Source: Malacoraja senta (Eukaryota). Taken from it: a stretch of DNA of 64,000 bases. The stretch covers positions 930,001-994,000 of the forward strand of contig CM075981.1 of the NCBI GenBank assembly GCA_038087875.1. Direction: 5' to 3'. Positions 3,121-57,783 of the stretch are shown here, piece by piece (position 1 is the stretch's first letter; every line of letters begins with the position of its first letter). Both the position numbers and the translations under genes were made by a program. The notes under the pieces are model-generated. The model was given only the letters and a program-made list of their open reading frames with translations, made no database searches and was not told where the DNA came from.

Positions 3121-3345
3121 TATAAATGAGTTTACCGGGTGCAGTTTAGTGTGCATTCTGATATTTGGATGATAACTTACACGAGAGACCACTGGAACAG
3201 CCAACACACTGGATATGCATTTCAGTAACAGATGGGATGAGACAGTGTGATGAAAGAACAATACATGGGATACTGTCTTGAATATGAGAAGGATCGTTAG
3301 CACAGGCCTTCAGCCAAGAGGTAAATATAATCCAAGCTTTATGTA

Positions 3346-3489
3346 TAAGAAGGAACTGCAGATGCTGGTTTAAATCAAAGATAGACACAAAATGCTGGAG
3401 TAACTCAGCAGGACAGGCAGCATCTCTGGAGATTCCTTCCCTCCAGAGTTGCTGCCTGTCCTGCTGAGTTACTCCAGCATTTGGTGTCT
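3346..3489. mobile_element. Fold-back pLTR mini-element
   Basis: About 50-bp inverted arms (gatagacacaaaatgctggag.../...ctccagcatttggtgtctatc). 16-bp TSD atccaagctttatgta (3330-3345, 3490-3505). Confidence 0.85.
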
Positions 3490-3721
3490 ATCCAAGCTTT
3501 ATGTAGTCTGGTTTACTGGCATTCCATAGAGCTGTACCTGCAGTAAGCATGCAATTAATTGCTGTGACATTTACAACACCAAGAGTGAATTTATGTTGAA
3601 TTTAGCTTTTTGTTGTTGTTATGTGCTTGTGATGCTGCTGTAAGTAAGATTTTCATTGTACCCGTGCCTCGCAGTATTTGTGCACATCACAATAAATTTG
3701 GCTTGACTTGACTGTTCGGGG

Positions 3722-4020
3722 TGGGACAGTGGAGCAGTGGTAGAGCTGCTGCCTCACAGCGCCAGAGAGCTATAGTTGATCCTGACTACGGGTGCTGTCT
3801 GCAGAGTTTGTACGTTCTCCCTGTGACTGCATGGGTTTCCTCCGGGTGCTCCGGTTTCCTTCCACATCCCAAAGACGTACAGGTTTGTCGGTTGATTGAC
3901 TTTGGTAAGAAAAATTGTAAACTGTTTCTAAAGTGTAGGATAGTGCTAGTGTACGGAGTGATTGCTGGTCGGTGCGGACTCGGTGGGCCGAAGGGCCTGT
4001 TTCCACACTGTATCTCTAAA
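3722..4020 (+). mobile_element. HE1/V-SINE-type SINE
   Basis: Full head, V-domain and tail. A second partial copy follows at ~4090-4225. Confidence 0.85.
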
Positions 4021-4323
4021 AGTAAAAAACTAAAATTAAAAGGCTGGACTATTTTCATCAATCATGGAAAATTGGATTACTTTTATTTTACACTCCAAAG
4101 ACGTACAGGTATGTAGGTAAATTGGCTTGGTAAATGTAAAAATTGTCCCTAGTGTGTGTAGGATAGTGTTAATAAGCGAGGATCGCTGGTCGGCGCGGAC
4201 TCGGTGGGCCGAAGGGCCTGTTTACTGAAGTATACTGAACTAAATTTGTTGAATTTAACTGAGACAACTTCAAATTCTAAAGTTTCACATTTTATCAGCA
4301 GTCTCATTCTGGTTTCACAATCA

Positions 4324-4334
4324 GGCTTCCTGTT
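4324..4334 (-). promoter_or_regulatory. Possible ETS-family site upstream of the leader exon
   Basis: aacaggaagcc on the - strand ~90 nt 5' of the ATG. ETS sites are common in leukocyte receptor promoters, but this is a motif match only. Confidence 0.25.
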
Positions 4335-4420
4335 CCCTGCTACCTCATTCTTGATACATGTCATATTTGTCAGACCATTCAGTCTGAGGACTAAGAGCTG
4401 AGCAGCAGATCAGTGCTAAC

Positions 4421-4478
4421 ATGGTCTCCGTGGATAAAACTATGTGGATTACAATCCTTCTCATTTATTCCCAGCCTG
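4421..4478 (+). CDS. CD300/pIgR-like receptor copy 1, exon 1 (signal peptide) MVSVDKTMWITILLIYSQP
   Basis: In-frame ATGs at 4421 and 4442, a hydrophobic leader, and a strong phase-1 donor G|GTAAGT that matches the phase-1 V exon. Confidence 0.8.
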
Positions 4479-4825
4479 GTAAGTAACAGCTTGATTTGGA
4501 CGTTCATGTGACCCGACTCTACGGGAAGTACGAGATAGTCACAAAGTGCTGGAGTAAGTCAGCGGGTCAGACTGAAGAAAAGTCTCGACCGGAAACGTGA
4601 CCCATACCTTCTATCCAGAGATGCTGCCTGTCCCTCTGAGTTACTCCAGCATTTTGTGTCTATCTTCGGTGTAAACCAGCATCTGCAGTTCCTTCCTTTA
4701 CATATGCTGGAAATACTTAGCAGGTGTGTCGAGAAAAATAGTTATCCTAAAACCTCACTCTATCTCTCTCCCCACAGATGTGGCGTGATCACCTGATTAT
4801 TTTTTTGTTTTCATGTTACCAAAGA

Positions 4826-5085
4826 CCTGGGTTCGATCCTGACTAAGGGGTCTGTCTGTACGGAGTTTGTACTTTCTCCCTGTGACCGCAAGAGTTTTCT
4901 CCCAGTGCTCAGGTTTCCTCCAACATCCCAAAGACGCACAGGTTTGTGGGTTAATTGGCCTCTATAAATAGGGAATATGGACTATGTAAATTATCCCAAG
5001 TGTGTAAGATACTAGGTCAGCATGGACACGTTGGGCCGAAGGGCCAGGTTCCATGCTCTACCTTAAACTAAACTAAACTAAACTA
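4826..5085 (+). mobile_element. HE1/V-SINE-type SINE in intron 1
   Basis: V-domain and tail followed by (AACTA)n. Confidence 0.8.
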
Positions 5086-5974
5086 AAGTAACAGTGTCAA
5101 AGTGCAAAGGGACCCTTTCTATTTATAAAATATTGTTTTATTGCTTGCTTGCTTGCACTCACTAACAGCAGCCAAGCAATAATGCCAAAACAATTGTCTC
5201 CATTTTACAACACTTCCTCTTATTTAAAGTTCAGATATTAAATTGTTTGACGTCTCAGTTCCTCTTGGGCTGAGGCTTAATCTTGCAATAAGTAGACATT
5301 TCCTTCTTGTTCTTGGACTTCAACCATGCATATTTGTCAAAGTCATCAGCATGCCATATTAATAATTTCTTGCGACCAAGTTATTTTTTTCAAATGTTAT
5401 TACTGATGCTCAGATGCATGAGCGAAGGCCAACATTGACTGTCTTCATTCACCAGATCATTTCAGGTAATCTAGGATCATTGCTTTACTAGTTTAGTTTA
5501 GTCCAATGAAGCCCAATTATTGATCGTTCAAGGGTGTAAATAGGAGGTCAGGACTGCGCTCTAGCTAGTGAGAGGATGGGTCAGTTGCCTGATAACAGTT
5601 GGGAAGAAACTGCCTTTGAATCTAGAGCATTGGGTTCAGTTTCTGTACCTCGTGCCCAATAGTAGACAGGTAAAGAAGGAGTGACTGGGATGAAACTGGT
5701 CCATGATTATGCTGGTGGCCTGTAATGGTCAGCTGGATGGTTGACAGGGAGGAGAAGGCTTTTGACCCCAGGACGGATATGGATGGACAAATCAGTAGGG
5801 CAGAAAAGTGGCAAAGACAGTTTAATCCAGAGAAGTGAGAGGAATTACATTTGACAAAGAGATCAAAATAAAGACATTAATAAATCGATGTTGAGGGAGT
5901 GTGGAGGAACAGAAGGACATTGAAGAATATTCTCACAGCTCATTAAATGCAACATGACAATTAGTTAGTTTAGA

Positions 5975-6245
5975 GATACAGCCTGGAACAGGCCCTTCGG
6001 TCCACCATTTCGAAGCCGACAGCGACTAGTTCTATCCTACACCCTTGGGGTAATTTACAGAAGCCAATTAACTTACAAACCTACTCATCTTTGGATTGTG
6101 GGAGGAAACTGGAGCACCCAGGGGAAACCCATGCGGTCACAGGGAGAACGTACAAATTCCATACAGACAGCACCTGTAGACAGGATCAATCCTGGATCTT
6201 TGGCGCTGTAAGGAAGCCACCCTTCTGCTGTGCCACTGTGCTGCC
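5975..6245 (-). mobile_element. HE1/V-SINE-type SINE in intron 1
   Basis: Reverse complement of the head, V-domain and tail motifs. Confidence 0.8.
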
Positions 6246-6690
6246 CAACTAGTGTAAACAGTTAGGACCAAAGAACTGCAGGTGCTGGTTTGTACCAAAT
6301 ATAGAAACAAAGTGCTGGAGTAACTTAGAAGGGTTACATGAACAAATCAAAATTCCCCCTCAGCTGTCTCCACCAAACACTTGTTATGCTGCCTGTCCTG
6401 CTGAGTTACTCCAGCATTTTGTGTCTACCTTCCACCTGTCACTTGCCAGGCTTTATCCCATCTCCACCTCTCTTCCAGCTTTCCCCACCCTATTTTAATC
6501 AGGCTGAAGAAGGGTCCCAACCCGACACGTCACGTGTCCATTCCCTCCACAGATGCTGCCAGATCTGCTGAGTTACATCGGCACTTTGTGTTTGACTCAA
6601 GGGTAAGTGAATGTCCAGACACGGGTTGGACCATTCGGCCTATCGTTGGTTAGGGAAGAGTGGGTGAGCCATCAAACGCTGTGTTAAGTA

Positions 6691-9527
6691 TTAAAGAAGG
6701 AACTGCAGATGCTGGAAAATCGAAGGTACACAAAAATGCTGGGAGAAACTCAGCGGGTGCAGCAGCATCTATGGAGCGAAGGAAATAGGCAATGTTTCGG
6801 GCCGAAACCCTTCTTCAGACTGATAGGAGGTGGGGAGATGAAAGGAAAAAAGGAAAAGCGGCGGAGGAGGAGCCAGAGGGCTGGGGGATGGGAGGACACA
6901 ACCAGAGGGCTGATGAAGGGGAGGGGACAGCAACGGCTAGCAGAGTTGGGAGAATTCAATGTTCATGCCCCAAGGATGTAGACTGCCCAAGCGGAATATG
7001 CGGTGCATTTCCTCCAATTTCCGGTGTTGCTCGCTGTGCCCATGGAGGAGACGCAGGACAGAGAGGTCAGATACGGAATGGGAGGGGGAGTTGAAGTGCT
7101 GAGCCACCGGGAGGTCAGGTAGGTTATTGCGGACCGACCGGAGGTGTTCGGCGAAACGATCGCCAAGCCTCCGCTTGGTCTCACCGATGTAGATCAGCTG
7201 ACATCTAGAGCAGCGGATGCAATAGATGAGGTTGGAGGAGATGCAGGTGAACCTCTGTCGCACCTGGAACGACTGCTTGGGTCCTTGAATGGAATCGAGG
7301 GGGGAGGTGAAGGGACAAGTGTTGCATCTCTTGCGGTTGCAAGGGAAAGTACCCTGGGAGGAGGTGGTACGGGAGGGAAGGGAAGAATTGACAAGGGAGT
7401 TACGGAGGGAGCGGGTCTTTGCGGAAGGCAGACATGGGAGGAGATGGGAAGATGTGGCGAGTGGTGGGGTCACGTTGGAGGTGGCGAAACTGACGGAGGA
7501 TCACTTGTTGTATGTGACGGCAGATGGGATGAAAGGTGAGGACTAGGGGGACTCTGCCCTTGTTGTGAGTGGGGGGGATGGGGAGAGAGAGCAGTGTTGC
7601 GGGGTATGGCAGAGACCCTGGTGCGAGCCTCATCTATGGTGGAGGAGGGGAACCCCCGTTCCCTGAAGAATGAGGACATTTCGGATGCCCTGGTGTGGAA
7701 CGCCTCATCCTGGGAGCAGATGCGGAGTAGACGGAGGAATTGAGAGTGGGGGATGGAGTCCTTACAGGAAGCAGGGTGGGAAGAAGTGTAGTCCAGATAG
7801 CCATGGGAGTCAGTAGGTTTGTAGTGGATGTCGGTATGAAGTCTATCACCTGCGATGGAGATAGTGAGGTCAAGGAATGGTAGGGAAGTGTCGGAAATGG
7901 TCCAGGTGTATTTGAGTGCCGGATGGAAGTTGGTGGTGAAGCGGTTGAAGTCAGTCAGTTGTGTGTGGGTGCAGGAGGTGGCACCAAAACAGTCATCGAT
8001 GTAGCGGAGGTAGAAGTCGGGGATGGGGCCCTGGTACGTATTGAACAAGGATTGTTCTACGTACCCGACAAACAGGCAGGCGTAGCTGGGGCCCATGCGT
8101 GTGCCCATAGCTACGCCTTGTATTTGCAGGAAATGGGAGGAGTCAAATGAGAAGTTATTGAGGGCAAGGACCAGCTCCACTAGTGGGAGGAGGGTGTCAG
8201 TGGCCGGGTATAGGTTGCTTCTTCGGTCGAGGAAAAACCGGAGGGCTTCGAGACCATCCTGGTGGGGGATGGAGGTGTACAATGACTGGATGTCCATGGT
8301 GAAGATGAGGCGGTGAGGGCCTAGAGAGTGGAATGCGCGCAGATAACGGAGAGTGTCTGAGGTGTCTTGAACATAGGTAGGGAGGGATTTAACCAAGGGG
8401 GATAGGATGGAGTCGAGGTAGGCGGAGATGAGTTCGGTGGGGCACGAACAGGCAGAGACAATGGGTCTACCGGGACAGTCACGTTTGTGGATTTTGGGGA
8501 GAAGGTAAAATCGGGCCTTGCGGGGCTGGGGAACGATGAGGTTGGAGGCTCGGTCGGGCAGGGCGTGGGAGTGGATGAAGTCGGTGATGGTGCTGGAGAT
8601 GGTGGCCTGGTGCTCGTCAGTGGGGTCATGGTCCAGGGGTATGTAGGAGGAGGTGTCCGAGAGTTGGCGCGTGGCCTCAGCTTTGTAGAGATCGACGCGC
8701 CAGACTACCACGACACCTCCCTTGTCGGCGGGTTTGATAACCCAATCTAGGTTGTTGCGGAGTGAGTCGATGGCAGTGCGTTCAGGGGGGGAGAGATTGG
8801 AGTGAGACGGGGAGTGGAGAAGTTGAGGCGGTTGATGTCACTGCGGCAGTTTTTGATGAAGAGTTCTAAAGCCGGAAGGCTACGAGGGGGGTTCCACGAG
8901 GAGGGGGTGCGTTGGAGACAGGAAAAGGGGTCATCAGTGGGGGGCGAGGACTCCTTCCCATGGAAGTGCGCTGTGAGGCGAAGGCGACGGTAGAAGCGTT
9001 CCAAGTCATGGAGGGCGCGGAACTCATTGAGGTGGGGACGGAGGGGGAGAAAGGTAAGACCTCTGCTGTGGACAGACCGTTCGATGTCAGAGAGGGGGAG
9101 GTCGGGGGGGATGGTGAACACCCGGCAGGGATGAGGGTTGGGGCCGGAGGAAGGCAGGTGGGTGGAATGGGGACGAGGCGATGTGTGGTGGGGGGGTGGT
9201 GGGTGGTGGGCGGGTGGTGGGTGGTGAGGGGGTGAGAGGGCTGTAGTGTGGGTGGGGAAGAGAAGGGGTCCCATAGTTGGAGAAGGATGGTGAAGTATCA
9301 GTGGAACTAACACTGTGGACTAGGCAGACTAGCGCTAGGACCCAGTGGAGTCAAACCCAGGAGGGTGGGAGTGAGCAGCGTGGAGGCTTCAGGCCCAGTA
9401 CACAGACCAGTCTGCAGGTGAGGCGACGGCTGCGGGCTGCTGGAGGGAGGTTCAGTGGCGAGGGTCGGCGGACCCGATGGTAGGAGTCCTCGGGCAGTGG
9501 AGTCGGGGTCGGCGGGGCTAGTAGATT
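6691..9527 (-). mobile_element. Penelope-like retroelement (RT + GIY-YIG endonuclease), frameshifted
   Basis: ORFs 7470-8711 (RT: GVAMGT, YLRYIDD) and 6937-7473 (C-x4-C-x2-C linker, LIYCIRC...IYIGETKR). 3' pLTR at 6691-6830. 11-bp TSD tgtgttaagta (6680-6690, 9528-9538). Confidence 0.95.
6787..6822 (-). ncRNA. Minimal hammerhead motif in the Penelope 3' pLTR
   Basis: CUGAAGA-A-GGGU UUCG GCCC-GAAAC-AUU. Penelope-like elements are known to carry minimal hammerheads. Counterpart at 47362-47397. Confidence 0.6.
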
Positions 9528-9577
9528 TGTGTTAAGTAGATTTGTCCTGTACATTTTCTGAAGATTTTTCTTCTCAG

Positions 9578-9904
9578 TTTCAGGTGGACTGTCCCTGTGG
9601 GGAAAGAAATCTGTAGGAGGAGTTGTGGGAAAAGATATCACAATCGATTGTCACTATAATGCATGGTACCGCTCACGCATTAAATACTGGTGTGACGGGT
9701 GGACTAACGCGTGTTTAATTGTAGTGGAAACAAATGGGCAACATGGACGGAGCGGAAGAGTGTCAATCACAGATAACCAGGCACAAGGAATATTTACTGT
9801 GACTGTGGAGCATCTTCACTCTGGAGATACAGGATGGTACAGATGTGGAATTGCTGCACCTGGCGTTGATCCATGGTTTAACGTTCATCTCCAAGTATCT
9901 GAAG
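9578..9904 (+). CDS. CD300/pIgR-like receptor copy 1, exon 2 (Ig V domain)
   Basis: ctcag| acceptor, GAAG|GTACGT donor, 327 nt, phase 1-1. Motifs ITIDCHY, KYWC..W..AC, RVSITD, FTVTV..L...DTGWYRCG give four Cys, as in CD300/pIgR/TREM V domains. Confidence 0.93.
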
Positions 9905-9924
9905 GTACGTTTTACATTTATACC

Positions 9925-10110
9925 AAGCCAATTAACCTGTAAACCTGTACGTTTTGGAGTGTGGGAGGAAACCGAAGTTTTCAGAGAAAACCCACGCAGG
10001 TCACGGGGAGAATCTACAAACTCCAGACAGACAAGGCCCCCGTGGTCATGATCGAACCCGGGTCCCTGGCGCTGTAAGGCAGCAATTCTACAGCTGTACC
10101 ACCGTGCTGC
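9925..10110 (-). mobile_element. HE1/V-SINE-type SINE just downstream of the V donor
   Basis: Reverse complement of head and V-domain. Mirrored at ~16625-16815. Confidence 0.8.
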
Positions 10111-10324
10111 CCTAAATGATGTACCAAAGGGATCCATGCCGGGATCACAATGCTGTTTGGCCGAATTCTGTTCTTACCCCTCCTGGGAGTTTACAGATGA
10201 CGCCCCTGGATCTTGAATAATGACGAAACGGCAAACAGGGAATTGTCTTTTATTGTGTAGGAAAGAACTGCAGATGCTGGTTTAATCGAAGATAGACACA
10301 AAATCTGTAGAGAAGATAGATTCG

Positions 10325-10815
10325 TCACTGGGTGGCGCCGAGATGGCAGCCTCGCCAAATCCTGTGTGTTATTTCAACATTTTTGTTATTTTTACTGTTT
10401 CTAAAATGTATGTTTTAATGTTTCGACCGTGGGGCTTGTGGACTTTAACACCATGAAGCCGCGGTCTCCAGTTAGAAAAGGCCGATTCGGGAGATCCATT
10501 CCGCGGAGTGTTTCCGTTCCGCCCCGACGCTGGAGTCTCCATCATCCCGACGAGAGGGCTTGAACATCGGCCCGTCGGCAGAGGCAGTGCTGAGGGTTCA
10601 AGGCCCCGACCACCACGGGTGAACAAAGGAGGAAGATGACTGAACTTTATTGCCTTCCATCACAGTTGCGAATGATGATTCCCCTGTGGTGGATGTTTTT
10701 GTTAAAATTATTGTGTATTGCGTTATTCTTTTTAACTTGTATGGCTGTATGATAACTCAAATATCACTGTACCTTTATTGGTGCACGTGACAATAAATGT
10801 GAACTTGAACTTGAA
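10325..10815 (+). mobile_element. Unclassified GC-rich non-autonomous retroelement with tgacaataaa(tgaact)n tail
   Basis: Related - strand copies at ~35075-35880 and ~37760-38160, and a truncated copy at 16078-16410. The tail resembles L2/Rex1-type 3' ends. Confidence 0.55.
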
Positions 10816-11004
10816 ATGCTGGAGTAACTCAGCGGGACAGGCAGCATTCTGGAGGGAAGGAATGGGTGACGTTTCCGCCCGAGACCCATCGTCAGACCCG
10901 AAACTTCACCCATTCCTTCTCTCCAGAGATGCTGCCTGTCCCGCTGAGTTACTCCAGCATGTTTTGTCTATCTTTAATTGACTTTTATTTCCTTTTCTCA
11001 ACAG

Positions 11005-11113
11005 AACCTAAATCTAATTCTGAATCGTCAACAACAGTAGCATTTACTTCAACTACAAAAGTAACACCTGAAAACAAATCTCAGGAAACCCCTGCGCCCA
11101 GTTTCGATAACAA
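11005..11113 (+). CDS. Receptor copy 1, exon 3 (Ser/Thr/Pro-rich stalk) EPKSNSESSTTVAFTSTTKVTPENKSQETPAPSFDN
   Basis: Polypyrimidine tract plus caacag| acceptor, phase 1 in. AA|GTATAA donor, phase 2 out, matching the next exon. Confidence 0.8.
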
Positions 11114-11187
11114 GTATAATTTTCACTTGCTCAAGTTTTGATTGGCCTTGCTTTTCAATATGAGGGGTGGAGACACAAGGAACTGTT

Positions 11188-11670
11188 GAAACATACATAG
11201 ATACATAGATAGATAGACAATAGGTGCAGGAGTAGGCCATTCAGCCCTTCGAGCCAGCACTGCCATTCAATGTGATCATGGCTGATCATCCACAATTAGT
11301 ACCCCGTTCCTGCCTTGTCCCCATATCTCTTGATTCCGCTAGCCCTAAGAACTCTATCTAACTCTCTTTTGAATTTATCCAGTGAATCGGCCTGCACTGC
11401 CTTCTGAGGCAAAGAATTCCACAACTCTCTGGGTGAAAAGGTTTTCCTCATCTCAGTTCTAAATGGGCTACCCCTTATTCTTAAAATGTGGCCCCTGGTT
11501 CCGGACTCCCCCAACATCGGGAACATGTTTCCTGCATCTCGCGTGTCCAATCCCTTAATAATTTTGTATGTGTCTATAAGATGCCCTCTCATCCTTCTAA
11601 ATTCCAGTGAATACAAGCCCAGTCGCTCCATTCTTTCATCATATGACACTCCCACCATCCCGGGAATTAA
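11188..11670 (-). mobile_element. CR1 LINE 3' fragment
   Basis: ORF 11296-11826 contains the CR1 ORF2 C-terminus (RLGLYSLEFRRMRG...TRGH...G.GY) plus 3'UTR and ATAG tail. Copy at ~51761-52243. Confidence 0.9.
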
Positions 11671-12319
11671 CCTCACTGGATGCTGGAACCTTGAGTACAA
11701 CACAAAGTACTGGAGTAAATCTAGCTTGTCAAGGGTGGCATGGTGGTGCAGCGGTAGAGTTGCTGCCTTACAATGCATAATCAAGGACCACCCACCCTGG
11801 TCACTCCCTCTTTTCCCCTCTCCCATCAGGCAAGTTGTATGGAGGTTTGAAAACGCACACCTGCAGAGTCAGGGACATTTTCTTCCCAGCAGTTATCAGG
11901 CAACTGAACCATCCACTCGCCAGCTGGAAAGCGATCCTGACCTCCCATCTACCTCATTGGCGACCTTCCAACTATCTTTAATCATCTGGTGACATAGAAT
12001 TAAAGATCAACTAAGCTGGTGCATGCTGGTGTTTACATACCACTCGTCACTTCTCCCATCTTTTCTTTTCTAACTTTATCAACGCTGGACACAAAGTGCT
12101 GGAGTACCTCAGCGAGTCAGGCAGCATCTCTGAAGAACATGGATAGGTGAGGTTTTGGGTCGAGATCCTGGATGGTGGAATTTCCCAGCTGAACTCCCTG
12201 GGCTCTGTTGCTGTACCCTGCTCCATGCAGAGATTTCACAGCAATCAGGATATTAATGTTTCCAACATGAACAATCTTTTTTCCTCGCACTGATTCTAGA
12301 TCTTTCCCCCTTTGCTCAG

Positions 12320-12410
12320 TTACATTATATGGACGGTGGGACGCTGGCTGTACTTCGCTCTGCTTGGGATCTGCAGTATCTCAGTCTCATTGTTCACAAG
12401 TATAAGGAAG
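12320..12410 (+). CDS. Receptor copy 1, exon 4 (transmembrane, contains Arg) YIIWTVGRWLYFALLGICSISVSLFTSIRK
   Basis: tttgctcag| acceptor, phase 2 in. Hydrophobic segment. AAG|GTATGT donor, phase 0. Confidence 0.85.
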
Positions 12411-13313
12411 GTATGTTTTGCGGATATCATCAGAATCGCTGAATGCTTCCAAATGATCTCCATTAATACCTTCAAACATGCTGATAAAATAAAACAAACG
12501 AAAAGTGTTTAGAAAAGGTATTTCACAAATACAGGCCAAACCAATGCTCTACGAAGATGATATCAATAGGTCTTGACAAGATGTTTGTGTGCAGAATGAA
12601 CTGAAGTGTTTGACGTAGATGTTGTAGCGTCATTGAATCGGAGAAATACAGCACGGAAACAGGCCCTTTGGCCCATTGTGGCCACGCAGACCATCATATC
12701 TGAACCCCAGTTCCCTCCCTTGTACTTTCAGTTTGAAGAACGGTCCCGACCTGAAATGTCACCCATCCTTTTTCTCCAGAGATCTTGCCTGACTTGCTGG
12801 GTTACTCCAGCACTTTGTATCTATCAGGCCATTGATCACCCATACACATTAGTTCTATGTTATCCCATTCTCTCATTGCAACTCCCAACACACTAGGGGA
12901 AATTCACACTGGCCAATTAATTTGCAAAACCACAAGTCTTTGGGAGGTGGGAGGAAACTGGAGCTAGCAGTTTTATGTTTATATTTAAATTTATTTATTA
13001 TTGTTATGTCTATTTTCTTTTTTTATGTGCTGCATTGGCAATAAGCATTTCACTACACCAATTGGTGTATGTGACTAATAAAGAACCGTTGAGCCTTTGA
13101 GACCCACATGGCCACAGCGAGAACATGCAAACTCCACACAGATAGCACCAAAGTCAAAATCCAAGCAAATTCTTGGACACTGTGAGGTAGCAGCTCTATC
13201 CGCTGCATCACTGTGCCAATTGGAAGCAGAATTCTGTTGTGAGTGGCCTTGTGAAATAAAGCACAATTTCCCGAGTTAATGAATCTGATGACTTCAACAT
13301 TTTTTTTTTGCAG

Positions 13314-13349
13314 GGACCCAATGAACCGAAACCTCACAGCTTTCCGTAG
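13314..13349 (+). CDS. Receptor copy 1, exon 5 (short cytoplasmic tail) GPNEPKPHSFP*
   Basis: Strong acceptor (T)10-GCAG|. The phase-0 reading stops at TAG 13347-13349. The complete model is 206 aa from ATG 4421. Confidence 0.65.
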   Translation, partial: GPNEPKPHSFP

Positions 13350-14004
13350 AAGGCAGAATGAAGATCCACTGGTGATAGTGACTGAGAAACAACTCTCCAA
13401 CAAGACCAAATGATCATTATTATTTTGAATGAATGAATGAATGAATGAATGCTTTATTGTCACATGTGACAAGTCGCAGTGTAATTCTTTGCTTGCTAAC
13501 CCAAGGTATGAAAATAGTCACCCATAAAGGGCATTGACAAAGTGTTTTTCAATTTGCTTTCATAATAGACTGCACAGAATTAATGTTTCTTCTGCTAAAA
13601 CTATTAACTTAGTTCACTCAATATTCACTCAGTAAAGGTGCCATCAAAACAATGTTGCAAGCCTTTATAGCAATGACATTATTTTGTGTTGTGTAGCATG
13701 ATATTGCAGTCATGAGGAATAAATTGTATTAAATCCTGGAAATGCCTCATGGTTTTAACTGTGAAGAATATTTGGAAGAGGGAAACTATAAGCTATGACA
13801 TCCCATCAGATCAATTGTTCTGGAAGTACTTTTTCTCATGAGAACATCATTGTAATATACATTGCTGAGCAGTTTTCAAGTCACGTCTGGCTTATTCTTA
13901 TATGCATGTATGGTGAGGTGCAGGTACAATGAAAATCACACTTGTGGCAACGTCACAGGCCCATACACGTAGACACACAAAAATATAAATGATACATAGG
14001 GTGT

Positions 14005-14300
14005 TCAGCGGTGGAGTTGCTGCCTTCATTTCAGCGCCAGAGACGCGGGTTCGATCCTGACTACGGGTGCTGTCTGTACAGAGTTTTTATGTTCTCCCCA
14101 TGACCAAGTGGGTTTTCTCTGAGATCTTTGGTTTCTTCCCACACTCCAAAGACGTGCAGGTTTGTAGGTTAATTGGCTTCGGTAAAATTGTAAATTGACC
14201 CTAGTGTGTACAGGATAGTGCTGGTGAGAGGAGGGGATCACTGGTTAGCGTGAACTAGGTGGGCCAAAGGTCCCGTTTCCATGCTGTATCTCTAAACTAA
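14005..14300 (+). mobile_element. HE1/V-SINE-type SINE
   Basis: Head, V-domain and tail motifs. Confidence 0.8.
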
Positions 14301-15250
14301 ACTTAACTCAACTAAGATGTCCAATTCTACTGAATAAAAGTCACCATATCTCTCAAGCTAATTGGCACTTTACTCAAAGCAATGGGTTCCATCTGACAAT
14401 CTTGTTCTCTTTATTCATTGCATGTGAAAACAGTTGAGACTTAATTTTATTTCCTTGCCTCAACAGAACTTGAATAATCTTATGAAGGAATGATGAATGA
14501 ATAGGTTTATTGACCAAATATTCACATACAAGGAATTTGCCTTGCTCTGCTCGCAAGTGCAATGTGACATTAGGAATGACACCTAAAACATTAAACATTA
14601 ACAATAACATATATTTTTATAACAGAACCAATGACAACCACACTATCTCCAATTACAAGATTGATATCAACAGTACTCAAAACAAAATATAGTGCAAGAT
14701 ATATTCTTGTCATAACTTTTTTTACGCACTGGAACTGAATCCATGTCAAGGACATTTGGTCGATTTTGTTTTGTTAAACGCAAGTGTCAAGAGTTTGATT
14801 GTCATATGTAGCGACAGGGGGGCAATATAGTTCTTTGTTTCAGTAGCATAACGAGTCTGCGGATTTATAGAGTTATACAACACGGGAAACAGACCCTTCA
14901 GCCCAACTTGTCCAAGTCGACCAAGATGCCCCATCTACTCTAGTTTCCTCCTGCCAGCGTTTGGTCCATCTCCTTCTAAACCAGTCCTATCATGTAACTG
15001 TCCAAAATGCCTTTAAAATGTTTTTGTAGCACCTGCCTCAACTACCTCATCATTTAGCTCATTCCATACACCCACAACTCACTGCGTGAAAAAATGATGC
15101 CCCTCAGGAACCTATTAAATATTTTCGCTTTTACCTGAAGCCTTGTCCCCTGAGTCTTGATTCCCCTACTCTAGGTAAGAGACTTGTTTCTCTTGTTACC
15201 CTTGTTTCCCTTTCCCCTAATCTGTCTGAAGAAAGGTCTCGACTCTGAAA

Positions 15251-15636
15251 CATATAAGATTGTTAAGGGCTTGGACATGCTAGAGGCAGGAAAACATGTT
15301 CCCGATGTTGGGGGAGTCCAGAACCAGGGGCCACAGTTTAAGAATAAGGGGTAAGCCATTTAGAACAGAGAGGAGGAAACACTTTTTCTCACAGAGAGTG
15401 GTGAGGTCTGTGGAATTCTCTGCTTCAGAGGGCAGTGGAGGCAGGTTCTCTGGATACTTTCAAGAGAGAGCTAGATAGGCCTCTTAAAGATAGCAGAGTC
15501 AGGGGATATCGGGAGAAGGCAGGAATGGGGTACTGATTAGGGATGATCAGCCATGATCACATTGAATGGCGGTGCTGGCTCGAAGGGCCAAATGGCCTAC
15601 TCCTGCACCTATTGTCTATAGTATTGTCTATTGTCT
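15251..15636 (+). mobile_element. CR1 LINE 3' fragment
   Basis: MFPMLGESRTRGHSLRIRG...; 3'UTR gatgatcagccatgatcac...cctactcctgcacc. Copy at ~55822-56205. Confidence 0.9.
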
Positions 15637-16834
15637 AAAACATCACCTATTCCTTTTCTCCAGAGATGCTGCCTGATCCGATGAGTAACTCTAGATTTTT
15701 GTGTCTATCTTCAGTTTGAACGAGCATCTGCAGTTCCTTCCAACACAACCCTATCTATTCCCCTCATTGTGCTTGTAAACACAATGCACACAGTTAATAT
15801 ATAATGTCCAAATATGAATTAGTTGATAACTCCAATAAGGAACAATAAATAACATGTCCTTAGTCCAACCAAAGACTGTCCATACTTCATAGTTGAGGTT
15901 AGTGTGCAGTGTTCAAAAGCCTAATTGTTGCTGCTGAGAAGCTGTTTCTTGAACCTGGAGGTCACGGTTTTCAGGCTCCTGTACCTTCTTCCCAATGGCA
16001 AGAGTGAAATGAGAGCATGGTCAGAGTGTCATAGAGTGATACAGTGTGGAAACAGGCCCTTCGGCCCAACTTTATTCGGCAATAAAGTTCAGTCATCTTC
16101 CTCCTTTGTTCACCCGTGGTGGTCGGGGGGCCTTGAACCCTCAGCACTGCCTCTGCCGACGGGCCGATGTTCAAGCCCTCTCGTCGGGATGATGGAGACT
16201 CCAGCGTCGGGGGCGGAACGGAAACACTCCGCGGAATGGATTCTCCCGAATCGGCCTTTTCTAACTGGAGACCGCGGCTTCATGGTGTTAAAGTCCACAA
16301 GCCCCACGGTCGAAACATTAAAACATACATTTTAGAAACAGTAAAAATAACAAAAATGTTGAAATAACACACAGGATTTGGGCGAGGCTGCCATCTCGGC
16401 GCCACCCAGTGACGCATCTATCTTCTCTATGGATTTTGTGTCTATCTTCGATTAAACCAGCATCTGCAGTTCTTTCCTACACAACAAAAGACATTCCCTG
16501 TTTGCCGTTTCGTCATTATTCAAGATCCAGGGGCCGTCATCTGTAAACTCCCAGGAGGGGTAAGAACAGAATTCGGCCAAACAGCATTGTGATCCCGGCA
16601 CTGATCCCTTTGGTACATCATTTAGGGCAGCACGGTGGTACAGATGTAGAATGGCTGCCTTACAACGCCAGGGACCCGGGTTCGATCATGACCACGGGGG
16701 CCTTGTCTGTCTGGAGTTTGTACATTCTCCCCGTGAACTGCGTGGGTTTTTCTCTTAAAACTTCGGTTTCCTCCCACACTCCAAAAACGTACAGGTTTAC
16801 AGGTTAATTGGCTTGGTATAAATGTAAAACGTAC

Positions 16835-17160
16835 CTTCAGATACTTGGAGATGAACGTTAAACAATGGATCAACGCCAGGTGCAGCAATTCCACAGCTGT
16901 ACCATCCTGTATCTCCAGAGTGAAGATGCTCCACAGTCACAGAAAATATCCTTGTGTCGGGTTATCTGTGATTGACACTCTTCCGCTCCGTCCGTGTTGC
17001 CCATTTGTCTTCACTACAATTGAGCACGCGATATCCCACCCGTGACACCAGTATTTAATGCGTGAGCGGTACCGTGCTTTATAGTGACAATCGATTGTGA
17101 TATCTTTTCTCACAACTCCTCCTACAGATTTCTTTCCCCACAGGGACAGTCCACCTGAAA
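16835..17160 (-). pseudogene. Orphan inverted Ig V exon (V2) with a 1-nt deletion
   Basis: Paralog of 9578-9904 with both splice sites intact. It is 326 nt, with a frameshift near 16949 (ggatatttt vs ggaatattt) that could be a consensus error. No - strand leader or TM exon found. Confidence 0.8.
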
Positions 17161-17211
17161 CTGAGAGGAAAAAATCTTCAGAAAATGTACAGGACAAATC
17201 TACTTAACACA

Positions 17212-19769
17212 AATCTACTAGCCCCGCCGACCCCGACTCCACTGCCCGAGGACTCCTACCGTCGGGTCCGCCGACCCTCGCCACTGAACCTCCCCTCCAG
17301 CACCCCGCAGCCGTCGCCTCACCTGCAGACTGGTCTGTGTACTGGGCCTGAAGCCTCCACGCTGCTCACTCCACCCTCCTGGGTTTCACTCCACTGGGTC
17401 CTAGCGCTAGTCTGCCTATACCTCAGTGTTAGTTCCACTGATACTTCCCCATCCTTCTCCAACTATGGGACCCCTTCTCTTCCCCACCCACACTACAGCC
17501 CTCTCACCCCCCCCACCCCCTCACCACCCACCACCCCCCCCACCACCCACCACCCCCCCACCACACATCGCCTCGTCCCATTCCACCCACCTGCCTTCCT
17601 CCGGCCCCAACCCTCATCCCTGCCGGGTGTTCACCATCCCCCCCGACCTCCCCCTCTCCGACATCGAACGGTCCGTCCACAGCAGAGGTCTTACCTTTGT
17701 CCCCCTCCGTCCCCACCTCAATGAGTTCCGCGCCCTCCATGACTTGGAACGCTTCTACCGTCGCCTTCGCCTCACAGCGCACTTCCATGGGAAGGAGTCC
17801 TCGCCCCCCACTGATGACCCCTTTTCCTGGCTCCAACACACCCCCCTCCTCGTGGAACCCCCCCTCGTAGCCTTCCGGCTTTAGAACTCTTCATCAAAAA
17901 CTTGCCGCAGTGACATCAACCGACTCAACTTCTCCACTCCCCGTCTCACTCCAATCTCTCCCCCCCTGAACGCACTGCCATCGACTCACTCCGCAACAAC
18001 CTAGATTGGGTTATCAAACCCGCCGACAAGGGAGGTGTCGTGGTAGTCTGGCGCGTCGATCTCTTACAAAGCTGAGGCCACGCGCCAACTCTCGGACACC
18101 TCCTCCTACATACCCCTGACCATGACCCCCACTGACGAGCACCAGGCCACCATCTCCAGCACCATCACCGACTTCATCCACTCCCACGCCCTGCCCGACC
18201 GAGCCTCCAACCTCATCGTTCACCAGCCCCGCAAGGCCCAATTTTACCTTCTCCCCAAAATCCACAAACCTGACTGTCCCGGTAGACCCATTGTCTCTGC
18301 CTATTCGTGCCCCACCGAACTCATCTCCGCCTACCTCGACTCCATCCTATCCCCTTGGTTAAATCCCTCCCTACCTATGTTCAAGACACCTCTGACACTC
18401 TCCGTCATCTGCGCGCATTCCACTCTCTAGGCCCTCACCCCCTCATCTTCACCATGGACGTCCAGTCATTGTACACCTCCATCCCCCACCAGGATGGTCT
18501 CGAAGCCCTCCGTTTTTTCCTCGACCGAAGAAGCAACCTACACCCGGCCACTGACACCCTCCTCCCACTAGCGGAGCTGGTCCTTACCCTCAATAACTTC
18601 TCATTTGACTCCTCCCATTTCCTCCAAATACAAGGCGTAGCTATGGGCACACGAATGGGCCCCAGGTACGCCTGCCTGTTTGTCGGGTACGTAGAACAAT
18701 CCTTGTTCAATACGTACCAGGGCCCCATCCCCGAATTCTACCTCCGCTACACCGATGACTGTTTTTGGTGCCACCTCCTGCACCCACACACAACTGACTG
18801 ACTTCATCCGCTTCACCACCAACTTCCATCCGGCACTCAAATACACCTGGACCATTTCCGACACTTCCCTACCATTCCTTGACCTCACTATCTCCATCGC
18901 AGGTGATAGACTTCATACCGACATCCACTACAAACCTACTGACTTACATGGCTTTCTGGACTACACTTTCTTCCCACCCTGCTTCCTGTAAGGACTCCAT
19001 CCCCACTCTCAATTCCTCCGTCTACGCCGCATCTGCTCCCAGGATGAGGCGTTTCCACACCAGGGCATCCGAAATGTCCTCATTCTTCAGGGAACGGGGG
19101 TTCCCCTCCTCCACCATAGATGAGGCTCGCACCAGGGTCTCTGCCATACCCCGTAACACTGCTCTCTCTCCCCATCCCCCCACTCACAACAAGGGCAGGG
19201 TCCCCCTAGTCCTCACCTTTCATCCCACCAGCCGTCACATAAAACAAGTGATCCTCCGTCAGTTTTGCCACCTCCAACGTGACCCCACCACTCGCCACAT
19301 CTTCCCATCTCCCCATATGTCTGCCTTCCGCAAAGACCACCTCCTCCGTAACTCCCTTGTCAATTCTCTTCCCTCCCGTACCACCCCCTCCCCGGGTACT
19401 TTCCCTTGCAACCGCAAGAGATGCAACACTTGTCCCTTCACCTCCCCCCTCGATTCCATTCAAGGACTCAAGCAGTCGTTCCAGGTGCGACAGAGGTTCA
19501 CCTGCATCTCCTCCAACCTCATCCATTGCATCCGCTGCTCTAGATGTCAGCTGATCTACATCGGTGAGACCAAGCGGAGGCTTTGCGATCGTTTCGCCGA
19601 ACACCTCCGGTCGGTCCGCAATAACCTACCTGACCTCCCGGCTCAGAACTTCAACTCCCCCTCCCATTCTGTATCTGACCTCTCTGTCCTGGGTCTCCTC
19701 CATGGCCACAGCGAGCAACACCGGAAATTGGAGGAAATGCACCGCATATTCCGCTTGGGCAGTCTACAT
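17212..19769 (+). mobile_element. Penelope-like element in the inverted arm, frameshifted, 3' end replaced by CR1
   Basis: RT and GIY-YIG fragments in ORFs 18122-19850. Same insertion point relative to the V exon (tacttaacaca at 17201-17211). Confidence 0.93.
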
Positions 19770-22700
19770 AGATACATAGATAGATACATAGAAAATAGGT
19801 GCAGGAGTAGGCCATTCGGCCCTTCGAGCCTGCACCGCCATTCAATATGATCATGGCTGATCATCCAACTCAGTATCCCGTACCTGCCTTCTCTCCATAC
19901 CCCCTGATCCCCTTAGCCACAAGGGCCACATCTAACTCCCTCTTAAATATAGCCAATGAACTGGTCTCAACTACCCTCTGTGGCAGAGAGTTCCAGAGAT
20001 TCACCACTCTCTGTGTGAAAAAGTTTTTCCTCATCTCGGTCCTAAAGGATTTCCCCCTTATCCTTAAGCTGTGACCCCTAGTCCTGGTCTTCCCCAACAT
20101 CGGGAACAATCTTCCTGCATCTAGCCTGTCCAACCCCATAAGAATTTTGTACGTTTCTATAAGATCCCCTCTCAATCTCCTAAATTCTAGCGAGTATAAG
20201 CCAAGTCTATCCAGTCTTTCTTCATATGAAAGTCCTGACATCCCAGGAATCAGTCTGGTGAACCTTCTCTCCACTCCCTCTATGGCTATAATGTCCTTCC
20301 TCAGATTTGGAGACCAAAACTGTATGCAATGCTCCAGGTGTGGTCTCACCAAGACCCTGTACAACTGCAGTAGAACCTCCCTGCTCCTATACTCAAATCC
20401 TCTTGCTATGAAGGCCAACATACCATTCGCTTTCTTCACTGCCTGCTGCACCTGCATGCCTACTTTCAATGACTGGTGTACCATGACACCCAGGTCTCGC
20501 TGCATCTCCCCATTTCCTAATCGGCCACCATTTAGATAATAGTCTGCCTTCCCGTTTTTGCCACCAAAGTGGATAACCTCACATTTATCCACATTATACT
20601 GCATCTGCCAAACATTTGCCCACTCACCCAGCCTATCCAAGTCACCTTGCAGTCTCCTAGCATCCTCCTCACAGCTAACACTGCCCCCCAGCTTAGTGTC
20701 ATCCGCAAACTTGGCGATGTTGCTTTCAATTCCCTCGTCCAGATCATTAATATAAATTGTAAATAGCTGGGGTCCCAGCACTGAGCCTTGCGGTACCCCA
20801 CTAGTCACTGCCTGCCATTGTGAAAAGGACCCGTTTACTCCTACTCTTTGCTTCCTGTTTGCCAGCCAGTTCTCTATCCACATCAATACTGAACCCCCAA
20901 TACCGTGTGATTTAAGTTTGTATCCTAATCCCTTATGCGGTACCTTGTCGAAAGCCTTCTGAAAGTCCAGATACAACACATCCATTGGTTCTCCCCTATC
21001 CACTCTACTAGTTACATCCTCGAAAAATTCTATAAGATTCGTCAGACACGATTTACCTTTCGTAAATCCATGCTGATTTTGTCCAATGATTTCACCACTT
21101 TCCAAATGTGCTGCTATCCCATCTTTAATAACTGACTCTAGCAGTTTCCCCACTACCGATGTTAGACTAACTGGTCTGTAATTCCCCGTTTTCTCTCTCC
21201 CTCCCTTCTTAAAAAGTGGGGTTACGTTTGCTACCCTCCAATCCTCAGGAACTACTCCAGAATCTAAAGAGTTTTGAAAAATTATCACTAATGCATCCAC
21301 TATTTCTGGAGCTACTTCCTTAAGTACTCTGGGATGCAGCCTATCTGGCCCTGGTGATTTATCGGCCTTTAATCCATTCAATTTACCCAACACCACTTCC
21401 CGACTAACCTGGATTTCACTCAGTTCCTCCATCTCCTTTGACCCGCGGCCCCCTGCTATTTCCAGCAGATTATTTATGTCTTCCTTAGTGAAGACGGAAC
21501 CAAAGTAGTTATTCAATTGGTCCGCCATATCCTTGTTCCCCATGATCAATTCACCTGTTTCTGACTGCAAGGGACCTACATTTGTTTTAACTAATCTCTT
21601 TCTCTTCACACATCTATAAAAACTTTTGCAGTCAGTTTTTATGTTCCCTGCCAGTTTCCTTTCATAATCCATTTTCCCTTTCCTAATTAAGCCCTTTGTC
21701 CTCCTCTGCTGGTCTCTGAATTTTTCCCAGTCCTCTGGTATGCTGCTTTTTCTGGCTAATTTGTACGCATCATCTTTTGCTTTGATACTATCCCTGATTT
21801 CCCTTGTTATCCACGGATGCACTACCTTCCCTGATTTATTCTTTTGCCAAACTGGGATGAACAATTTTTGTAGTTCATCCATGCAGTCTTTAAATGCCTT
21901 CCATTGCATATCCACCATCAACCCTTTTAGAACTAATTGCCAGTGAATCTTGGCCAATTCACGTCTCATACCCTCAAAGTTACCTTTCTTTAAGTTCAGA
22001 ACCGTTGTTTCTGAATTAACAATGTCACTCTCCATCATAATGAAGAACTCAACCATATTATGGTCACTCTTGCCCAAGGGGGCACGCACAACAAGACTGC
22101 TAACTAACCCTTCCTCATTACTCAATACCCAGTCTAGAATAGCCTGCTCTCTCGTTGGTTCCTCTACATGTTGGTTTAGATAACTATCCTACATACATTC
22201 CAAGAAATCCTCTTCCTCAGCACACCTGCCAATTTGATTCACCCAATCTATATGTGGATTGAAGTCACCCATTATAACTGTTTTGCCTTTGTTGCACGCA
22301 TTTCTAATTTCCTGTTTGATGCCATCCCCAACTTCACTACTACTGCTAGGTGGCCTGTATACAACACCTACCAGCGTTTTCTGCCCCTTAGTGTTTCGCA
22401 GCTCTACCCATCCTCCAAGCTAATGTCCTTCCTTTCCACTGCGTTAATCTCTCTAACCAGCAACGCTACCCCACCTCCTTTTCCTTTCTCTCTATCCCTC
22501 CTGAATATTGAATATCCCTGGATGTTCAGCTCCCAGCCTTGGTCACCCTGGAGCCATGTTTCCGTGATCCCAACTATATCATAATCATTAATTGCTATCT
22601 GCACGTTCAACTCATCCACCTTATTACGAATGCTCCTTGCATTCAGACACAAAGCCTTCAGGCTTGTTTTTACAACGCTCTTACCCCTTATACAATTATG

Positions 22701-24233
22701 TTGAAAAGTGGCTCTTTTTGATTTTTGCCCTGGATTTGTCTGCCTGCCACTTTTACTTTTCACCTTGCTACCTATTGCTTCCGCCCGCATTTTACACCCC
22801 TCTGTTTCTCTGCTCACCCATTTAAGAACCCCACCACCTCTTATTCTCTGTTTATTAATGTTTTCTTCTTTCCCCCCTACATGTTGGGTCTGAGTGCTTT
22901 CCTTCTCTGCCTCCTGCCTCACACACTGTCTAATAGCATTCTCTATTTGAGTCCCTCCCCCCAACCATTCTACTTTAAAGACTCCCCAGTAGCCTTTGCA
23001 GATCTCCTCGCCAGGATATCGGTCCCCCTCAGGTTCAAGTGCAACCCATCCTTTTTGTACAGGTCGAACCTTCCACAAAAGAGGTCCCAATGATCCAGAA
23101 ATTTGAATCCCTGCCTTCTGCACCAGTCCTTCAGCCACGCATTTATCCTCCACCTCGCTCCTTTCCTACTCTCACTGTCGCGTGGCACAGGCAGTAATCC
23201 CGAGATTGTTACCTTTGCTGTCCTTCTCTTTAACTCCCCTCCTAACTCCCTAAATTCTCCTTTCAGGACCTCTTCTCTTTTTTTAACCTATGTCATTGGT
23301 ACCTATATGTACCACGACCTCGGGCTCCTCTCCCTGCCCTTTCAGGATATCTTGGACACGTTGAGACACATCACAGACCCTGGCACCAGGGAGGCAAACT
23401 ACCATCCGGGTCTCCCGACTGCGTCCACAGAATCGCCTGTCTGACCCCCTAACTATAGAGTCCCCTATTAGTATTGCCCTCCTCTTCTTTTCCTTACCCT
23501 TCTGAGCAACAGGGCCGGTCTCTATACCGGAGGCCCGGCCGTTGTCGCTACCCCCAGGTAGGCTGTCCACCCCAACAGTGCTCAAACAGGAGTACGTATT
23601 GTCAAGGTGTACAGCCACCGGGGTACTCTCTCGTCCCTGCCTGTGCCCCTTGCCTCTCTCAACCGTGATCCACTTGCCTGCCTCCTGTGGTATTGGAGTG
23701 ACCACATCCCTGTAACTCTTCTCAATGAGTTCCTCGCTCTCCCTGACCAGACGGAGGTCATCGAGCTGCTGCTCCAGGTTCCTAATACGGTCCATTAGGA
23801 GCCCCATCTCGATACACCTGGCGCAGATGTGGACGTCTGGAGGGCTATCAGACTCCATGACTTCCCACATCTGACATCCAGAACAGTAAACTGCCCTGGC
23901 CCTCATACTCCCCTTACCTAGGATACAATACAAAACAAACTGCTACAATACAAAACAAACTGCTACAATACAAAACAAACTGCTACAATACAAAACAAAC
24001 TGCTACAATACAGTACAATCAGCAGGGATCTGACTCCCAATCAGCTGCTCCCTCTTGTCTGCTTCCACCAATCAGCGGCTTCCTCAAGCCCACTTGTTTT
24101 TGAAGTGGAACTTGGAACGTTGCCGATTTTGGCACTCTGTAAGGAACAAGCAAGCCCCGCGCTCCACTTTATCCCCTACCGCTCAGGTGTAGCTCCTCCC
24201 TCTGCGACAGCTCCAACGGCTCTCGGGCCTCTG
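19770..24233 (-). mobile_element. Near full-length CR1 LINE (ORF1 zinc finger/SGNH esterase; ORF2 APE endonuclease + RT)
   Basis: ORF1 23283-23933 and 22970-23188 (CSGC..CARC, LIGDSIVR, HIGTND, DGLHLN). ORF2 begins LNARSIRNK; 751-aa RT portion at 19870-22125 (GVPQGSVLGP, FADD). Disrupted by a stop near 22190 and a 13-nt deletion near 22410. Confidence 0.95.
23924..24013. repeat. 20-bp tandem repeat (tacaatacaaaacaaactgc) x4.5 in the CR1 5' region
   Basis: Four exact units plus a partial unit read directly. Confidence 0.95.
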
Positions 24234-24235
24234 TT

Positions 24236-26992: not shown

Positions 26993-27004
26993 ATTTTTAT
27001 AATT

Positions 27005-40155: not shown

Positions 40156-40245
40156 GAGAGATTTTTAATTTGGTGTGAGTTTTTGGCAATACTTGATTTA
40201 CCACTCTGTTCAGATGACACTGCGTTAATCTGCTTTATACTTTGT

Positions 40246-57733: not shown

Positions 57734-57783
57734 CTGAGAGGAAAAATCTTCAGAAAATGTACAGGACAAATCTACTTAACACA

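Follow-up and report, generated by a model that had tools for sequence, protein, structure and literature searches.

A young palindrome with two V exons at a CD300-like receptor locus of the skate Malacoraja senta and its probable origin as an inverted segmental duplication

Five described systems come closest to a locus in the skate Malacoraja senta, where the V exon of a receptor gene (V1) and an inverted second V exon (V2) lie on opposite arms of a palindrome, with the stalk, transmembrane and tail exons of the gene between them. The locus occupies a 64,000-nt stretch of contig CM075981.1 (assembly GCA_038087875.1, positions 930,001 to 994,000 of the forward strand), which is called the window here and whose first letter is position 1. 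The gene is a member of the CD300/CMRF35-like family by its sequence matches, and the palindrome is probably a young, lineage-specific inverted segmental duplication within a tandemly duplicated receptor gene, a by-product with no dedicated function.

Activating receptors of the CD300/CLM family have a single V-set domain resembling CLM-1 and the first domain (D1) of pIgR, both cysteine pairs, a Ser/Thr stalk, a basic residue in the transmembrane (TM) segment and a very short tail, and the skate gene has each of these features. Its homologues are named CMRF35-like by NCBI, and its V exon is fast-evolving and appears to exchange with paralogues as in primate CD300A/C; gene conversion among the V exons of CD300 paralogues is documented in primates (PMC12447643). 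In contrast, no inverted V relic has been described next to other genes of the family, and the assignment made here is to the family and not to a particular mammalian member.

Inverted segmental duplications attributed to fork stalling and template switching (FoSTeS) or microhomology-mediated break-induced replication (MMBIR) are lineage-specific and combine a single-copy spacer of a few kb with microhomology at both breakpoints, filler that looks templated and breakpoints in repeats. The skate palindrome is alike in all of these respects, its breakpoints lying in a short interspersed element (SINE), the microsatellite tail of a long interspersed element (LINE) and a G-rich retroelement. It differs in that this origin is read from the junctions only, and in that the exact abutment to a LINE tail leaves a route mediated by reverse transcriptase (RT). 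In the immunoglobulin (Ig) pseudo-V arrays of chicken and rabbit, V segments without leader or promoter, some of them inverted, lie beside the expressed V, and short mosaic patches occur, as they do here; the skate locus, however, has one such copy per unit in place of an array, belongs to a non-rearranging innate receptor, shows no sign of somatic or AID-driven events, keeps its fixed V1/V2 differences, and lacks conservation among skates. Ampliconic palindromes of sex chromosomes likewise have large inverted arms around a short unique spacer with genes, but their arms are kept at about 99.9% identity or higher by conversion and have been conserved for millions of years, whereas the skate arms are 97.3-97.7% identical. 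Arkhipova et al. (2013, PMC3846280) report that Penelope elements disperse host genes together with their introns, and internal initiation of reverse transcription is also reported for such elements (PMC11167929). Here too, a Penelope-like element and adjoining unspliced host sequence were duplicated jointly; unlike the dispersed copies (PMC3846280), the skate copy is not framed by terminal repeats, lacks the 3′ end of the element and has no recognisable target-site duplication (TSD). The parts of the locus are all of known kinds, and their combination is a new instance and not a new kind.

Architecture and history of the palindrome

Self-BLAST divides the window, which has no runs of N, into two tandem units that are direct repeats of each other (1265-23417 and 41865-64000, 98.7% identity) with a period of about 40.6 kb; the 17 kb between them contain only LINE open reading frames (ORFs). 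In unit 1, the inverted arms lie at 6976-10654 (left arm L1, plus strand) and 16078-19769 (right arm R1, minus strand), and align over 3707 nt with an identity of 96.5% when gaps are counted and 97.4% for substitutions only (self-BLAST and four-arm alignment). Besides the V1 exon, L1 contains 2552 nt of the Penelope-like element and 750 nt of intron 2, and R1 is an inverted copy of the same sequence. Between them is a unique 5.4-kb spacer (10655-16077, plus strand) that carries exons 3 to 5. Unit 2 has the same arrangement, in which the left arm L2 (47551-51227, plus strand) includes the V1′ exon at 50157-50477, the right arm R2 (56654-60338, minus strand) includes a fully open V2′ exon at 57407-57727, and the two arms are 96.9% identical (self-BLAST). 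There are exactly four V exons in the window according to tblastn, two on the plus strand (9586-9903 and 50159-50476) and two on the minus strand (17152-16836 and 57725-57408).

The original prediction for this stretch had described a leader followed by Penelope and V1, a spacer with exons 3 to 5, and an inverted V2 with Penelope, all repeated in unit 2, and self-BLAST, Pfam and tblastn together recover that layout. Its description of the spare V exon also holds, as all four V exons retain an AG acceptor and a GTACGT donor and the V2 of unit 2 is fully open; further, tblastn with homologous proteins finds no leader or TM match on the V2 strand in the window, as had been claimed. The placement of Penelope within the arm was correct for most of the element, which in fact runs 285 nt past the outer arm edge.

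The Penelope-like insertion (6691-9527, minus strand) lies in intron 1, is flanked by an 11-bp TSD, TGTGTTAAGTA, at 6680-6690 and 9528-9538, and stops 45 nt short of the V1 acceptor. Pfam identifies RVT_1 within 7470-8711 and GIY-YIG within 6937-7473, both on the minus strand of L1, which is the RT/endonuclease combination of Penelope-like elements, in an ORF that is broken across three frames in this copy. A hammerhead ribozyme in the terminal repeats, a further mark of such elements, was not found by Rfam, nor was any other RNA, either across the whole window at the gathering threshold or in 5500-24500 at E<=1, although divergent motifs could escape these scans. Separately, hairpin-like short repeats of the type gctggagtaactcagcgg...ccgctgagttactccagc recur in the introns (10820-10960, 6340-6580 and 6700-6830) and have no Rfam match. 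The left arm has a GC skew of +0.40 and the right arm one of -0.39 (window 8000-10000 and 16000-20000), a strong strand asymmetry that is due to G-rich runs of the antisense strand of the Penelope element and that might have favoured fork stalling.

Orthologous loci from three skates, Leucoraja (L001, protein P0047), Amblyraja (L002, P0044) and Rhinoraja longicauda (L004, P0154), serve as outgroups. They are collinear with the window and have 85-92% nucleotide identity in introns and flanks, with 88-92% for introns; the introns of Leucoraja and Amblyraja are about 10% diverged from those of the window. In all three, the Penelope site is empty, with window position 6690 joined to 9528 through an 11-nt overlap (L001 14339-14349, L002 14013-14023 and L004 12968-12978). 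The Amblyraja spacer is collinear with that of the window and has the identical orientation up to window position 16072, equivalent to L002 48372 inside an uninterrupted SINE, and orthology restarts at window position 28858, equivalent to L002 49475; neither the right arm nor the LINEs beyond it occur at this site, and about 1.1 kb of target found in Amblyraja is missing from the window. No minus-strand V exon is present in 110 kb of the three skate loci. Since the Penelope site is empty in three skates and the right-arm site is empty in Amblyraja, the palindrome is younger than the split from these skates and, as far as these sites tell, is young and lineage-specific. A search for the same layout in relatives had been suggested by the original prediction, and these empty sites are its outcome.

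The four arms record the order of the duplications. In a four-way alignment of L1, L2, R1 and R2, in which identities count substitutions only, L1 and L2 are 99.3% identical, R1 and R2 are 98.7% identical, and left and right arms are 97.3-97.7% identical. Parsimony-informative sites unite L1 with L2 and R1 with R2 at 57 positions, L1 with R1 and L2 with R2 at three positions (9594, 9611 and 9677), and L1 with R2 and L2 with R1 at a single position (9744, a CpG C-to-T change); all four homoplasies of the 3.7-kb arm are confined to 9594-9744. The 57 sites that separate left from right arms indicate that the inverted duplication is older than the tandem duplication. Moreover, no left/right phase switch occurs along either arm pair in the four-arm alignment, which together with the 57 fixed differences argues that neither unit has undergone an inversion or a large conversion since the tandem duplication, and that the arms have not been homogenised.

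Comparison of the two units reveals a different pattern along the gene. The units differ by about 2% at 1265-4265, by about 0.1% at 4265-16765, and by about 1.3% in the right arm and the LINE, which suggests that a recent 12.5-kb conversion between the units was overlaid on an older duplication. Inside this core, two patches (7355-7575 and 9433-9744) differ by 4-4.5%. Exons 1, 3, 4 and 5 and their flanks show no difference between the units (100% identity), and identity falls to 97.3% in the V exon region. Judged from these identities, the gene body is in concerted evolution and the ligand-binding exon forms islands of divergence within it. The other patch, 220 nt long and inside the Penelope element (7355-7575, equivalent to 47928-48148 in unit 2), differs by about 4% between L1 and L2 in near-identical surroundings; its variants are not right-arm-like, so that its donor, if any, would lie outside the window.

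The junctions of the right arm suggest how it was copied. At the inner junction (16073-16077), the SINE is broken after ...CAACTT (16072) and is followed by a 5-nt filler, TATTC, and then by the arm; a 9-nt inverted repeat, AACTTTATT / AATAAAGTT, spans 16068-16089 around a 4-nt centre, with an AACTT overlap. At the outer junction, the arm end equivalent to position 6976 directly adjoins the (TCTATGTA)n 3′ tail of a LINE, with a 5-nt microhomology, TACAT/ATGTA, at 19765-19769; the tail repeat is variable, as judged from a second copy of the LINE. Template switching in the course of replication or repair (MMBIR/FoSTeS or fold-back) is the most likely copying mechanism to be read from these junctions, because there is 5-nt microhomology at both and partly palindromic filler at the inner one; an empty site in relatives accompanies them.

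Taken together, the palindrome arose in four steps. A Penelope-like element first entered intron 1, 45 nt upstream of the V exon. A 3.7-kb piece, in which the V exon is preceded by most of the Penelope element and followed by part of intron 2, was then copied in inverted orientation 2.3 kb past the poly(A) signal, where a broken SINE borders it on one side and a LINE with its microsatellite tail on the other. The entire 40.6-kb unit was next duplicated in tandem, and the gene body (about 4265-16765) was finally homogenised between the units. The sequence itself shows this order.

The LINE beyond the right arm is a full-length copy (19770-24012, minus strand, 5′ limit approximate) with RT, endonuclease and an ORF1-like region, and neither the missing part of the SINE nor that of the arm was found beyond its 5′ end. 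Its sequence at 19772-20774 is 98% identical, in inverted orientation, to 36217-37218, and a 92% identical copy is present in the Amblyraja locus (L002 28802-31849); the LINE family appears to be young. Two AT-rich fragments of L1-like LINEs (25435-27003 and 27170-28753, minus strand) lie in tandem with 74% identity, in a block that is absent from the orthologous Amblyraja site. Two other origins of the right arm were considered and rejected. A 3′ transduction by a LINE fails, as the sequence upstream of 6976 is the 3′ end of Penelope and holds no LINE, and a plain retrocopy with 5′ transduction by Penelope fails, as the right arm is without the last 285 nt of the element and without a TSD.

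The receptor gene and its V exons

The gene model has five exons with canonical splice sites and compatible phases throughout, and its spliced product is 204 amino acids long. Exons other than V were located by tblastn with homologous skate and ray proteins. Exon 1 (4421-4478, plus strand), which encodes the leader or signal peptide, was found with the homologues P0044 and P0047 and is supported by its ORF and splice sites; it has a phase-1 donor, GTAAGT, and its copy in unit 2 (44996-45053) is 100% identical. Exon 2, or V1 (9584-9904, plus strand, 321 nt, phase 1-1), encodes a V-set domain of the pIgR/CD300 type according to Pfam, PDB matches and splice sites. Exon 3 (11005-11113, plus strand) encodes the Ser/Thr-rich stalk, exon 4 (12320-12410, plus strand) encodes a TM segment with an Arg and is 93% identical to residues 265-294 of P0044, and exon 5 (13314-13349, plus strand) encodes an 11-residue tail and the stop codon, with a 3′ untranslated region (UTR) that extends to AATAAA at 13718. 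The TM exon was missed by a hydrophobicity scan, owing to the Arg within the segment, and was recovered by homologue-guided tblastn.

Several matches place the gene in its family. In particular, the ORF at 9625-9942 (plus strand) matches the Pfam V-set domain (E=1e-10), the PDB matches of the V domain are pIgR (3.5e-47, a multi-domain match) and CLM-1/CD300 (4e-19), pIgR D1 and CLM-1/CD300 being its nearest solved structures, and both the canonical and the extra cysteine pair align (DCHY, YWC, AC and YRCG; four of four cysteines). The nearest proteins are from skates and rays, including 'CMRF35-like molecule 1' of Leucoraja erinacea (XP_055510915, P0047) and XP_032898776 of Amblyraja radiata (P0044), which have 71-72% V-domain identity. 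Moreover, the exons of a related skate's assembled mRNA (P0153, contig L003) follow the identical order of leader, V, stalk, TM and tail; this mRNA shares the stalk-TM junction, and its 3′ UTR corresponds to window 13312-13724 and terminates at the same AATAAA. By these features the gene is a CD300/CMRF35-like receptor of the activating type, that is, a predicted type I protein with an Arg in its TM segment and a short tail.

Reading through the donor of the stalk exon (11114-11141) yields ...KYNFHLLKF and a stop codon at 11139-11141, after nine codons, and the RefSeq model of the Leucoraja protein terminates in the identical read-through peptide, YNFHLLKF-stop. A soluble isoform produced by conserved intron retention at the stalk exon is therefore possible, and a soluble receptor would need no flip of the DNA. 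Separately, the Amblyraja radiata model XP_032898776 spans 35 kb (L002 10001-45653) and has a second plus-strand V exon at 40210-40521, with about 27 kb of LINE- and Penelope-rich DNA between its stalk and TM exons; no such DNA is present in the window, and the Amblyraja model is probably a fusion of two genes.

The V2 exon of unit 1 (16835-17154, minus strand) keeps its splice sites and is frameshifted by a 1-nt deletion (AA to A) at the equivalent of position 9789. The right arm that contains it begins 2.3 kb past the likely poly(A) site of the gene. Private 1-nt homopolymer indels number 19 in R1, 9 in R2 and 1-2 in the left arms, and between the units there are 28 such indels in the 3.7 kb of the right arm, 1 in the adjoining LINE and 2 in the left arm. 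Such a ratio of indels to substitutions far exceeds that of usual natural divergence. The indels of the right arms are probably consensus errors, which affect any reading-frame call made there, and the frameshift of the unit-1 V2 may itself be an assembly error; as the deletion belongs to the same homopolymer class, it is not used as evidence of decay. The open frame of the unit-2 V2 is, in turn, no evidence of constraint, since 6-10 random substitutions leave the V exon open with a probability of 0.56-0.71.

The V exons have diverged far more than the arms around them. The divergence between L1 and L2 is 3.1% in the V exon and 0.4-0.5% in the surrounding arm; between R1 and R2, it is 3.1% and 0.7-1.2%; and between left and right arms, it is 4.1-5.3% and 1.6-2.8%. 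The V exons diverge 3-7 times faster than their flanks, and synonymous sites add to the excess as well. When changes are polarised with the three skate orthologues, the V1 lineage has four exon changes (H to D, S to L, S to R and L/M to W), each of which replaces an amino acid and none of which is synonymous, and the V2 lineage has two exon changes; in the flanks, the left-arm lineage has four changes and the right-arm lineage seven. By this comparison, V2 looks like a leaderless fossil of V1 that evolves at an approximately neutral rate and retains the more ancestral sequence, while V1 is altering its protein. The mosaicism of the V exons probably reflects the diversifying selection and short-tract gene conversion that are usual in innate immune multigene families, with V2 perhaps one partner among several.

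Alternatives and significance

Several observations weigh against the palindrome being an inert by-product of DNA-based copying. The first lies at the outer junction, where the right arm adjoins the 3′ tail of a LINE exactly. Copying through DNA alone leaves this fit unexplained, except if the LINE had been in place beforehand and the break fell in its microsatellite. An origin of the right arm through RNA would account for it, in that the RT of a LINE or of Penelope would have been primed at the nicked SINE, copied the nascent sense pre-mRNA of the gene from 10654 to 6976, and then switched through microhomology to the tail of the LINE RNA, leaving right arm and LINE as a single chimeric insertion. 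The right arm sits exactly between the break in its target and the LINE 3′ tail, in the orientation fitting cDNA of a sense pre-mRNA, with the TACAT 5-nt microhomology to the tail repeat at one end and snap-back-like filler at the opposite end, and the two reported properties of Penelope elements, dispersal of intron-containing host genes (PMC3846280) and internal initiation of reverse transcription (PMC11167929), agree with such a route. However, the template order that it requires, host RNA followed by full-length LINE RNA, is the reverse of that in known chimeric retrocopies; the arm neither includes the final 285 nt of Penelope nor is framed by its terminal repeats; and no TSD was found, while about 1.1 kb of the target seen in Amblyraja is missing. 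Overall, an RNA route appears unlikely, and template switching during replication or repair is the preferred explanation for the right arm.

The remaining observations concern the V exon. Three V-exon sites (9594, 9611 and 9677) have states that are common, in cis, to the V1 and V2 of one unit. At 9677, a derived A-to-G change that is not CpG decay is common to L1 and R1, and the change at 9594 is synonymous. In simulations with generous branch lengths and strong rate heterogeneity, the probability of at least three cis homoplasies arising by parallel mutation was 0.0003-0.003; as parallel mutation is this improbable, V2 may not be wholly inert in evolution. Further, R2 keeps an ancestral-like ACT ACA (ITT) where L1, L2 and R1 have GCT GCA (IAA). 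A three-base cluster at 9703-9707 in L1 agrees with the states of the outgroups. The cis-shared sites, the ACT ACA of R2 and the cluster in L1 call for templated exchange in place of point mutation, and occasional germline micro-conversion between V exons is a plausible source.

These sites raise the possibility that V2, lying in cis, donates to or exchanges with V1 in germline conversion that diversifies V1 over evolutionary time, as a one-member pseudo-V arrangement. The confinement of all four homoplasies to 9594-9744, and of the three cis-shared ones to the exon's first half, would fit such a partner, as would the simulated probabilities, the three- to sevenfold faster divergence of the V exons at synonymous sites as well, and the V-exon conversion documented among CD300 paralogues in primates (PMC12447643). 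In contrast, V2 is marked by A at 9628, C at 9664, 9694, 9716 and 9843, and T at 9875; eight fixed differences between V1 and V2 have never been exchanged, and two of them, 9628 and 9664, sit untouched between the cis-shared sites, so that any arm-to-arm tracts would have been multiple and very short (less than about 35 nt). The pattern at 9853/9856 fits a transfer from V1 to V2 equally well as the reverse. Most private changes of V1 (9606, 9617, 9660 and 9703-9707) are not V2-like, for which other donors or mutation are needed, and paralogues outside the window were probably involved. Finally, the arrangement is absent from three related skates, and polishing errors among four near-identical copies could imitate shared states. 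A role for V2 as an evolutionary conversion partner in cis is accordingly doubtful. A stronger form, in which V2 is a cis template for short-tract conversion of V1, either at an unusually high rate in the germline or somatically in leukocytes, and the locus is a minimal and recently born donor-V module, is quite improbable. The donor-template diversification of the original prediction therefore retains the three cis-shared sites in its favour and loses ground to the unhomogenised arms with their 57 fixed differences, to the absence of the arrangement in three skates, and to a V2 that lies outside any transcript context.

An inversion switch, whether programmed or recurrent, in which recombination between the arms flips the spacer or swaps V2 into the gene to give off or soluble states, is highly improbable. 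Its appeal is geometric: non-allelic homologous recombination can act on inverted 3.7-kb arms with 97% identity, and a flip would leave the leader facing V2, or facing V1 with no TM exon. To this extent the original prediction was right in principle, as a crossover would flip the spacer and uncouple the TM exon and a double event would move V2 into the gene, but there is no sign that either has occurred or is used. The spacer has a single orientation, which is the ancestral one, in the assembled sequences of unit 1, unit 2 and the Amblyraja orthologue; neither arm pair has a left/right phase switch; relatives do not share the structure; neither a recombinase nor specific sites were seen at the locus; and read-through of the stalk donor alone could supply a soluble isoform. 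The predicted switch thus gains no positive support, and, on the sequence evidence, a switch or donor function for V2 is unsupported.

An assembly artefact, with the right arm arising from fold-back chimeric reads as the original prediction had allowed, is very unlikely, because the lower consensus quality suggested by 3-4 times more 1-nt homopolymer indels in the right arms than in the rest of the unit is set against 57 substitutions common to both right arms, a unique 5.4-kb spacer, distinct SINE and LINE junctions, and a structure assembled twice with private differences, whereas such chimeras give near-identical arms without a spacer.

An inverted segmental duplication without dedicated function is therefore the reading retained for the palindrome. 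On present evidence, and with the caveat of assembly quality in the right arms, the locus mainly reflects ordinary birth-and-death and conversion dynamics in a CD300-like family of cartilaginous fish. It provides a datable, stepwise case of how a retroelement-rich immune cluster is remodelled, through insertion, inverted duplication, tandem duplication, partial homogenisation and mosaicism limited to the V exon. If it is true that V2 has exchanged sequence with V1, the locus would also be a donor-V arrangement arising from scratch beside an innate receptor, and would bear on the origin of templated diversification.

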